Positions 18,001 to 20,935 of a stretch of 64,000 bases of DNA are shown piece by piece (positions within the stretch are counted from its first letter, which is position 1; the number at the start of each line of letters is the position of its first letter). Origin of the DNA: Setoptus koraiensis (taxonomy: Eukaryota; Animalia; Arthropoda); contig CM106586.1 of assembly GCA_048013815.1 (NCBI GenBank), forward strand, positions 17,174,001 to 17,238,000. The letters run 5' to 3'. The notes beneath the pieces are model-generated. The model worked only from the letters and a program-made list of their open reading frames with translations, was not told the origin of the DNA and made no database searches. Both the position numbers and the translations under genes were made by a program.

Positions 18001-20935
18001 TGGGAATCAGTGACGGTAGCGATGATTGATTGAGGCCCATGTAGCCCATGTTGTACGCTGGCGGACCATAGAGGCTGGTCGGTCGCAAAGTGAATATGTC
18101 GTCCACGAGAACGTCGTTGATGTAACCGAGCGTGGTCATGCGACCAACGTGCAACCCCGCAGCAAATATCTTGTGTCCCGTGATGATCTGCTGGCCGGCC
18201 AAGTAAGTCTTGACGGAATCGCGCAACAGCGACGTTAGATTTATGTGCCCGTTGATCAGTGTGTCGATAAACAACTCTCTGACGTGAACGGGGCCCACGA
18301 AGTCGACGTTGCCCGTCATGACCAGTGTGTTTTGGCGATTGTTTTGGTCGTGGGGCGCCAGCGGGATGGCGCTGTCGACTATGCGCGACACATTGTGTCC
18401 GTTGAGAAACGGGTGCGGATGCTGAAATTTAACATTTCTGGCGGTCAAACTTGCGAACGTTTTGCGGCCAGTTAAGACAGTGGGGGCCGGCTTGTTATCC
18501 AGTGTTACGAATTCGTCCAGTCGGATGCCGTTGAGCGTCGAGTTGGGCGCCAGCACGAGCGAGCCCGCGTCCACCGACACAAAGTCCAGCGGACTATCGA
18601 TTATCTGCCAGTCCTTGGACGTTACGTCCACGGCGTCCCTCAGATAGTGCTGGCCGTTGATTTTGCCCACGATCTCCAGCTTGTCGGCCACCACGGCGCC
18701 CCTGAACCAAGTGTGCGATCTGATGTTTTGCTCGCCGCTTAAAGTGATGGCCTCTCGCTCGAGTTGCCTGAACGGCATTCCATTGAGCCTAACGTCGTCG
18801 TTTTGTATACCTGACGTAAATATGACTTGGCGCGCCACCAATCCGTTCAAGAAGCGCGTCTTGCCCGTGATGATTGAGTGGGAGTTTGGGTGAACGGCAT
18901 GGCTCAGCTTCTTGGTGATGGCGTCCAATAGGGCGCGAGCCGCATTTAGATTGGCGTCAAAAATGGCGGGCGATATCGGGGGCTGCGGGCCGCGGTATTG
19001 TCGCGGCTGCTGGTGCTCGCGATACTGGCCCGAGTTGTTGCTCGATGTGATCATGACCATCTGGGGCGACTTGATAAGTGCACCCCTGACAATCACGTTG
19101 CCGTGCACGACCACGGGCGACGTGATGCTGACCACATCGCGGCCGTCCTTGCGCCAGACGCTGTCCTTGCGGGCGTGTAATTGCTCCAATTGTCGCTCTC
19201 GCGTCAGCAGGATCCGCTCCAGGTCTCGAAAACATTGTTCGGGATTGTTGGCCAGCAGCGACTGGTTGACGAATGGGGCGCCCATCGGGCCGGCGCCGGC
19301 CAGCGACGAATTATCGGTGAGCCTGTGCACTTGAACCCTGTGATTGGCCCCACCGGCCAGCGCGTAGACGCGATTCATGGTGTCGTGATTCACGAGCTGC
19401 ACTGAGCTGACTCCACTTAGGCTGTCGCTCGATAGTATCGGCTGAAAGCTCTTGCCCCCGCCGCTAGAGGGCGAGGGGGCGAAAAAGTGGAGCTTATTGT
19501 CCGACTGGGACAGCACACTGAGCAGCGTTGTTGTTGAGTTGGGCAGGAGCCCGATGGACAAATCGGCGGCGCCCTGCGCGATCAGCTGCTGCGGCCAAAA
19601 TTGCCTGTCCATGGGCGACCAAATGTAAATGGCGACCCCCTCGCTGGTGCCGAACACCAGAAACCCGTTTTGGCTGTAGCTGGTGGGCAGGGTTTGCTGG
19701 CTGGGGTTGTCGACGTACAGCCACGGCTCGGGCGTTTCGCTGAAGAACTGCACCTTCCGGGCCTGGCCCAGCAATTTTATGTACTGATGATAGGCGATTT
19801 GAATTTCGTGGTTTCGCCGGAATCTGAACACGGCATTCCCGACAAATTTGTTGTTTCCGCTGTCCATTACGTCGGCGTTGTTGCTCTTGGTCACAACCAA
19901 ATAGGACGAGTTGGCGTGCCGAGACAGTCGCGCCTCGAACAATTGTTGCTGGGCGACCGCTATGTAAAAGTGATTGATTATTTTGAACATTTTCACCGAA
20001 TGGGGCATCGCGTGGGTGTTCACCGTGATCTGCAGATCGAACTGGGTCCTGGTCCAGGCGTACAGCTCGAGATTGTCCGAGGTGCGCTGGTGCGCTATGC
20101 TCATGTAGCAGTGCCGCCGGCTGAAATTAATGTCGTAATCGGCTATGAGGCCGGTGGTGAAAATAATCGTTTGCGACGGCTTGATGTGGGGCCTATGCTG
20201 CTGCACCTTGGCCTTGTAGATTTTCACCAGACTCAGGGTTGTGGCCCCGGTGCCGTTGTAGTTGGGGCCCGGTTTCGCCATCGCCGCTGCCGCTGATGAG
20301 GCAAATCTGTTGTTGTTGTTGTTGTTGCTGTTGTCGTCGCCGGCATACTGCCAGATCAGATTGTTGTAGGCCACAATGTAGTACACCGAGCTGTAGCTCG
20401 GTTCATAGAAGTAGCCCAGTTTGATGGGCCGAAATTGGCGGATGTCAATTGTGGATTTGGGCGTCTCGTCCTCTATTCTGATAGATGCAACCTGTTGTAA
20501 ATTTTTGTTCAACTTGATAATGTCCAGTGAGTTGTCGGCACGCGAACACAACACCGACAGGTCCGTGTCATTTTTCTTGCTCAACGACGGCACCCAGGCG
20601 GCCAGCTCGCAGTCGAGCTCGACGGGGCGCCGGTCGAGGGTCAGTGTGGATTGACAATGGGCTAATTTACTCGTTGCCACCAGTAACGTCAGTAGTAGGG
20701 AAAATAACAATAACGGAAATGATATCTTACCGTCTTGTGGATTTTGGAGATTGACATAGGCATTTACAAGCGAACGACGGGTGATCATGTCTCGGCAGAC
20801 ACGTATGGATAATACGGGACCAGCCGTTGAGAAACGTTCAAATAATGTGGCCTCAGTGACATCGGGTGTTAGATCGCCAACATATAATGAGGCCATAGAC
20901 GATGATGATGGAGGTGCTGCTGGTGTCGAGTTCAT
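15008..20935 (-). CDS. Chimeric ORF, 1975 aa: PABP exon-1-derived residues 1-68, six intron/junction residues, a signal-peptide h-region, then ~1,900 aa of a large extracellular protein with EAR/EPTP-like ends and repeated (Q)xITGxKTF-type motifs (Closca/Nasrat/Polehole-like by recollection, unverified)
   Basis: Single uninterrupted ORF. The first 221 nt align to 50673-50893. [20 protein letters not shown]|Q looks like signal h/c regions. The family assignment is from memory of motif patterns only. Confidence 0.8.
16020..16290. repeat. Proline-rich coding repeat (PPALIS-type, 21-bp unit x5-6, plus PPPPTPVL units)
   Basis: GGTGGCGGTGATATTAACGCT units on the plus strand. Confidence 0.9.

Follow-up and report, generated by a model that had tools for sequence, protein, structure and literature searches.

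What happens to a fragment of an RNA-binding domain once it has become the beginning of a secreted protein? The question is raised by a 64,000-nucleotide stretch of the mite Setoptus koraiensis (assembly GCA_048013815.1, contig CM106586.1, positions 17,174,001 to 17,238,000; hereafter the window, with coordinates counted from its first letter). Exon 1 of a PABP gene is present there twice, at the PABP gene itself and, as an inverted copy, at the head of a large open reading frame (ORF) of a secreted protein, where it forms an N-terminal leader. All amino-acid changes between the two exons fall within RNP1, the RNA-binding octamer of the first RRM (RRM1) of PABP. The first steps after the birth of a gene can seldom be read from sequence, and young chimeric genes offer one of the few opportunities to do so. 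For this one, donor, copy, outgroup and the reading frame from before the insertion are all at hand. If each change is assigned to its branch and mutational events are counted, the RNP1 signal lies within chance, and the numbers are too small to demonstrate selection. We give slightly better than even chances to two multinucleotide mutations having hit a translated, weakly constrained leader derived from a non-functional RRM fragment.

The donor exon is located at 50673-50877 (+), with PABP exon 2 beginning at 51148, and the captured copy at 20731-20935 (-), where its 68 codons and one additional base head the large ORF. Re-alignment of the copy to the donor gave 8 substitutions in 205 positions and no indels. 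Five are synonymous, namely V19 (GTG>GTT), F32 (TTC>TTT), A38 (GCC>GCT), N62 (AAC>AAT) and P66 (CCT>CCA), and three are non-synonymous, namely G57V (GGA>GTA), Y58N (TAT>AAT) and F63L (TTC>CTC). The RNP1 octamer (codons 56-63; 20747-20770, - strand), which reads LGYAYVNF in the donor and LVNAYVNL in the copy, accounts for four of the eight substitutions and for every amino-acid change; the rest of the exon contains 4 synonymous and no non-synonymous changes. A sequence-only reading of the locus had obtained the same substitutions, split, RNP1 coordinates and 4:0 ratio outside RNP1 by hand, and its count is exact. The substitutions are real, since a contig from an independent study (run X2, covering 20346-20796) matches the window without a single difference, including the junction and the mutant RNP1. 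An assembly error of the window as source of the mutant RNP1 is ruled out by this identical contig.

On which branch did these changes arise? A Logan contig (L001) of a sister species, with PABP (exon 2) 93% identical, served as outgroup. It keeps the order of G-protein-coupled receptor (GPCR) tail, neighbour gene and PABP, and because this gene order is the same as at the donor locus (48.5-53 kb), the latter is taken as ancestral. The protein encoded by the outgroup exon 1 is that of the donor, with 15 synonymous base differences between them. By this comparison G57V, Y58N, N62, F63L and A38 belong to the copy's branch and F32 and P66, at which copy and outgroup agree, to the donor's branch. 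V19 has three different states in donor, copy and outgroup, and no branch is assignable to it. Polarisation by an outgroup had been set beforehand as a test of the sequence-only reading, and all three amino-acid changes did fall on the copy's branch; its suspicion that some synonymous changes stem from the donor holds for F32 and P66.

How improbable is the concentration in RNP1? The octamer accounts for a share of 0.120 of the possible non-synonymous mutations. For three independent hits, the probability is 0.0017 if RNP1 was named in advance, 0.008 for RNP1 or RNP2 and 0.033 for any 8-codon window. Such figures are in favour of an explanation by selection, according to which the leader is translated from M1, is under purifying selection, and had its RNP1 function (RNA contact, beta3 packing or aggregation) specifically removed as harmful to endoplasmic reticulum (ER) targeting and secretion. 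The derived state of the three changes, the lack of any non-synonymous change in the other 60 codons and the maintenance of the recipient ORF (see below) point the same way. However, RNP1 was chosen as the region after the changes had been seen, and the hits form two pairs. G57V and Y58N (20766 and 20764; GGATAT>GTAAAT) are 2 nt apart, and the synonymous change at N62 and F63L (20750 and 20749; AACTTC>AATCTC) are adjacent. Two pairs at most 2 nt apart among 5-6 independent substitutions have a probability of 0.011-0.026, and because two such tight pairs are improbable by chance, the RNP1 hits are not independent. Counted as two events, they give 0.014 for pre-named RNP1, which still leans towards selection, 0.041 for RNP1 or RNP2 and 0.18 anywhere in that span.

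Paired substitutions fit a mutational origin, and two multinucleotide events probably account for those in RNP1; compensatory doubles favoured by selection would be the other explanation. Multinucleotide mutation produces mostly non-synonymous changes and mimics selection (bioRxiv 10.1101/165969). Patch conversion from window sequence was considered as a further source of the pairs. Within the window neither mutated 12-mer has another exact copy, only single-mismatch chance matches being present, and since no template was found, such conversion is unlikely.

Was there anything in the leader for selection to inactivate? Position 3 of RNP1 (Y58) is a canonical stacking aromatic of RRM domains, and G57 and F63 are structural positions, which is in favour of a selected loss. 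In the copy the intact RNP1 consensus is gone, with V at position 2, N at position 3 and L at position 8. On the other hand, Y60 (position 5 of RNP1) and Y18 (in RNP2) are unchanged, which speaks against such a loss. The captured exon encodes the N-terminal tail, RNP2, alpha1, beta2 and beta3 of RRM1 only (beta1-alpha1-beta2-beta3) and ends with QNPQD; alpha2 and beta4 are encoded by PABP exon 2, outside the copied DNA, and the leader lacks a full fold unit. Since a fragment of this composition would probably not fold as an RRM, selection against residual RNA binding is not required. Folding and RNA binding of the leader were probably compromised already at capture, and there was perhaps nothing to inactivate. 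The sequence-only reading had proposed that residual RNA-binding or folding capacity was lost through the RNP1 changes; with an exon that ends inside RRM1 before alpha2 and beta4, and with changes resembling two events, this step can be dispensed with. Residues 57, 58 and 63 correspond to G53, Y54 and F59 of human PABPC1 (1CVJ). The Pfam profile RRM_1 (PF00076) matches residues 17-67 of the leader at profile positions 1-50 of 70, stopping at 50-51, with 36 bits (E = 6.2e-9; cut-off 20.7) for the copy and 56.6 bits (E = 2e-15) for the donor exon.

Is the leader constrained at the protein level? Of the sites in exon 1, 152 are non-synonymous and 52 synonymous. The pairwise contrast of donor and copy, 3 non-synonymous to 5 synonymous changes, gives p = 0.027, a value that is misleading because the strongly constrained donor branch is mixed with the copy's branch. 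On the copy's branch only, the ratio is 3:2 or 3:3, with omega about 0.5 or 0.33 and Fisher p = 0.60 or 0.17, and dN/dS is not significantly below 1. Under neutrality, 73% of non-stop mutations would be non-synonymous, and the binomial probability of at most 3 non-synonymous changes among 5 or 6 is 0.41 or 0.20. The copy-branch ratio is indistinguishable from neutral, contrary to what a leader under purifying selection would predict, and we infer that the leader is nearly neutral. Divergence of the whole leader block (donor 50651-50893, copy 20957-20715; 11/243 mismatches) is 3-4 times higher than that of block 1 (donor 48556-49983, copy 22759-21318; 17/1428; p = 0.001), and changes on the copy's branch show the same difference (8/243 versus 7-10/1428; p = 0.0005-0.002). 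Block 1 was rejected as a neutral yardstick, as it contains a constrained gene, the copy of which has 5 synonymous and 1 non-synonymous changes relative to the donor, all in exon 2 and on the copy's branch.

Is the leader translated? The chimera is a single intact ORF of 1,975 codons (15008-20935, - strand), an in-frame fusion. Before residue 219 its in-frame methionines are M1 (20935), M14 (20896) and M50 (20788), all in the captured exon. As the only pre-signal AUGs of the intact ORF lie in the leader and a secreted product needs one of them, we infer translation of the leader, at least in part. The claim that the leader is "translated and constrained" thus divides: translation of at least a part is argued for by the intact ORF and by these AUGs, while constraint finds no support in the copy-branch p of 0.17-0.60. 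Run X7 was taken as RNA on account of a contig spliced from PABP exon 1 to exon 2, no listed run being recorded as RNA, and it contains a contig inside the large ORF (20002-20211).

Which of the three codons is used bears directly on RNP1. If translation or transcription started further downstream (at M50, or M14), only the last third of the leader would be coding; M50 would give a 25-residue n-region followed by the h-region, a near-normal signal peptide, most of the captured exon would be 5' untranslated region (5'UTR), and the RNP1 codons would belong to the n-region, either at liberty to vary or adapted to that role. At -3 of M1 (20938, - strand; donor 50670) the copy has T where donor and outgroup have A, a change on the copy's branch, and M50 has G at -3 and is followed by an RR pair. 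Relatives of the recipient protein have signal peptides of about 20-30 residues. The copy is moreover without about 211 nt of the A-rich 5'UTR of the donor (donor 50440-50650 versus copy 20958-20980), and because the donor mRNA contig in X7 extends only to about 50488, inside this absent stretch, the start site of the copy may have moved. Nevertheless, M1 and M14 come first, with no stop between them and M50; two out-of-frame AUGs precede M50 and would also catch scanning ribosomes; and a downstream start leaves the pairing of changes without explanation. We hold it to be quite unlikely. Directly upstream of the leader ATG, 3 of 22 bases differ between copy and donor, and short upstream ORFs beginning ATGAAAGTG are present at both loci alike.

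The first pair also has a possible meaning at the RNA level. At 20761-20766 (-), the change of GGATAT to GTAAAT yields a hexamer resembling a splice donor, which lies 37 nt upstream of the PABP donor that was retained. This hexamer, or altered exonic splicing signals, might affect the joining of leader and body, and the sequence itself invites the idea, with the retained donor GTAAGA nearby and, likewise close, TTAG at 20662 as a possible acceptor. Yet splicing from the new GT to the acceptor at 20662 would remove 106 nt and break the frame (hand count), no spliced contig was seen at the leader in the run contigs, and the second pair has no splice reading, so that an effect of this kind is extremely improbable.

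Taken as a history of the locus, the explanation by two mutational events would run as follows. In an eriophyoid-like mite, a stretch of about 2.05 kb would have been copied, inverted, into a gene for a large secreted protein, interrupting it at codon 14. The captured exon would supply the sole start codons ahead of the h-region and would be translated, in its 3' part at least, as an N-terminal leader. This leader would have changed at 5 or 6 bases after its capture, four of which make up the two tight pairs in RNP1. It would be under weak or no protein-level constraint, the pairs would represent two multinucleotide mutation events, and the RRM1 fragment would already have been short of most folding and RNA-binding ability. 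The coincidence with RNP1 would on this reading be chance or at most mild selection.

Several points weigh against this history. G57, Y58 and F63 are identical in 11 of 11 genuine PABP sequences aligned, and three independent hits in RNP1 have the low probability given above. On the other hand, nearly all of residues 14-68 are invariant among the aligned PABPs, so that any amino-acid change there would strike a "conserved" residue. The origin of the pairs in two events was read from their spacing and not seen directly. With copy-branch synonymous rates of 3-5% (leader and exon 2 of the neighbour gene), 4.5-7.6 non-synonymous changes are expected versus 3 seen (Poisson probability about 0.34 to 0.055), the neutral yardstick for the leader being uncertain. 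Mild constraint outside RNP1 is possible, and the leader as such may be under protein-level constraint. Finally, run X7 has no contig of the copy-type leader or junction, and none over 20372-20730.

On balance, we regard the specific removal of RNP1 function from a leader under purifying selection as unlikely. Had selection brought about the RNP1 changes, the locus would illustrate the neutralising of a captured domain fragment. A bolder form of the idea is that selection soon after the fusion disabled the RNP1 strand via compound double substitutions, stopping RNA binding or aggregation of the nascent leader and restoring co-translational ER targeting. It strikes us as very doubtful; if true, a newborn chimeric gene would here offer a natural example of the "detoxifying" of a domain fragment that it had captured.

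How did the exon come to its new place? Both donor and copy are in the window, and the donor segment (48556-50893, +) runs from the neighbour gene across the shared intergenic region into PABP, of which it takes in exon 1 and 16 nt of intron 1. These 16 bases, including the GT donor, are retained at 20715-20730 (-), identical to the donor locus, and are read through in frame as (G)KISFP. Because intron sequence was kept, the copy is a DNA duplication and not a retrocopy, the latter origin being ruled out. The PABP 5' region was copied and rearranged (20936-21319, - strand, with homologous blocks at 20957-20936, 21004-20981, 21073-21012 and 21319-21207). Besides block 1 and the leader block, donor 50177-50287 corresponds to copy 21319-21207 (1 mismatch), donor 50367-50428 to copy 21073-21012 (5/62 mismatches) and donor 50416-50439 to copy 21004-20981 (0 mismatches). 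In addition, 133 nt of the copy (21074-21206) stand where the donor has 79 nt, and donor positions 49984-50176 (193 nt) have no counterpart in the copy. Contig depth in runs X2 and X5 reaches 3.5-5 times the local baseline at 21042-21319, and at 21145, 21146 and 21208 many contigs break off or part from the window sequence; depth and breakpoints point to a repeated element in the promoter region of the copy.

The insertion left the original start of the recipient gene stranded at 22760-22800 (-). Its ATG at 22800 encodes MRPKQQHSHGTGRW and, with reading frames determined by hand, is in frame with the h-region once the insert is removed. GTTA flanks the insert on either side and also opens the donor segment. 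The left junction would be either a 4-bp microhomology or a target duplication, the right junction showing neither, and both would fit templated repair synthesis rather than transposition.

The rest of the duplicate is the copied neighbour gene (21320-22759, +; exon 1 21642-22123, intron 22124-22238, exon 2 22239-22630). It is transcribed divergently from PABP, with an intergenic region common to both, and encodes a coiled-coil protein with no significant Pfam family (copy 21642-22645, +; donor 48670-49659, -). Exon 1 of the copy (482 nt) has a single change, and a 14-nt insertion (22632-22645) alters the C-terminus. The intron is seen as a GT..AG joint in run X7, in a contig that has the letter of the copy at 22254. 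The duplicated gene looks both expressed and constrained. Exact look-ups of the neighbour protein found the outgroup donor locus only and nothing for the copy in the window. Next to the donor segment, an intronless ORF of 896 codons (45792-48482, +) has features of a seven-transmembrane receptor with a very long low-complexity third loop, and its last 330 residues are 81% identical to those of the outgroup.

And what is the gene that received the insert? Its sequence now begins at 20645-20714 (-) with a 20-residue hydrophobic h-region followed by QS, 74 residues from M1 (Kyte-Doolittle 15-residue mean up to 2.6), and the remainder of the intronless ORF extends over 15008-20644 (-). An exhaustive HMMER search gave relatives of 1,600-1,760 amino acids with 36-40% identity, all of which start with a short canonical signal peptide. 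Kinship with arthropod EPTP-repeat proteins, by Atlas features, is a lead only. The ORF body of 5,703 nt is free of stops, versus 2.4-7 expected at 1.2-3.5% branch divergence (P = 0.09 to 0.001); the probability of no stop is below 0.01 at 2.5-3.5% and 0.30-0.09 at 0.6-1.2%. Because no stops have accumulated, the recipient gene appears to have been maintained since the insertion. Two word-index protein searches found no close ortholog of the large ORF, and the exhaustive HMMER search only matches of at most 40% identity. No pre-insertion allele was seen in the read-run contigs aligned to the window, that of X2 being the same chimera.

Among named sequences, the closest PABP is that of the eriophyoid mite Fragariocoptes setiger (72% identity). 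This fits the intron-poor genes in the window and published eriophyoid genomes (PMC7738191). The annotated PABP of Halotydeus destructor (P0071) reads, at residues about 65-85, through the same phase-1 intron after QQPPD-G (GKTTLADFRSLI), which looks like an annotation artefact. It shows that distant mites have this intron at a common position.

Two cautions of general use come from the locus. Pairwise dN/dS of donor and copy lumps together two branches of very different character, and clustering looks stronger than it is where substitutions are nearly adjacent. The pairs in RNP1 are similar to the multinucleotide mutations of Venkat, Hahn and Thornton (bioRxiv 10.1101/165969) in being near-adjacent, mostly non-synonymous and on one branch, where they inflate clustering and branch-specific signal; unlike there, a single-event origin is deduced here from spacing alone. 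With PABP RRM1 (1CVJ, 4F02, PF00076) the leader shares its match to RRM_1 and its alignment to PABPC1 residues 3-64. It differs in being a domain fragment rather than an RRM protein and in the replacement of three RNP1 residues that genuine PABPs hold invariant.

Taken whole, the chimera is an attractive example of a young gene; its substitution pattern by itself is of modest interest. In Drosophila chimeric genes such as Sdic and those of the jingwei type, a partial DNA duplication brings a promoter and first exon to another gene. The chimera described here is likewise a DNA-level copy, with intron sequence kept, that gives a 5' regulatory region, a start codon and N-terminal codons in frame, after which the captured piece diverges. 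In contrast to the Drosophila cases, the insert lies within the signal-peptide n-region of a secreted protein and leaves the old ATG stranded, the captured piece is a partial RRM, and a second whole gene, seemingly still functional, came along with it. Further parallels are signal peptides that carry a long N-terminal extension, and signal anchors of type II. The chimera resembles these in having its h-region and an A-x-C cleavage-like site far from the first AUG, and departs from them in that its extension of 74 residues arose recently, through the accident of a gene capture.

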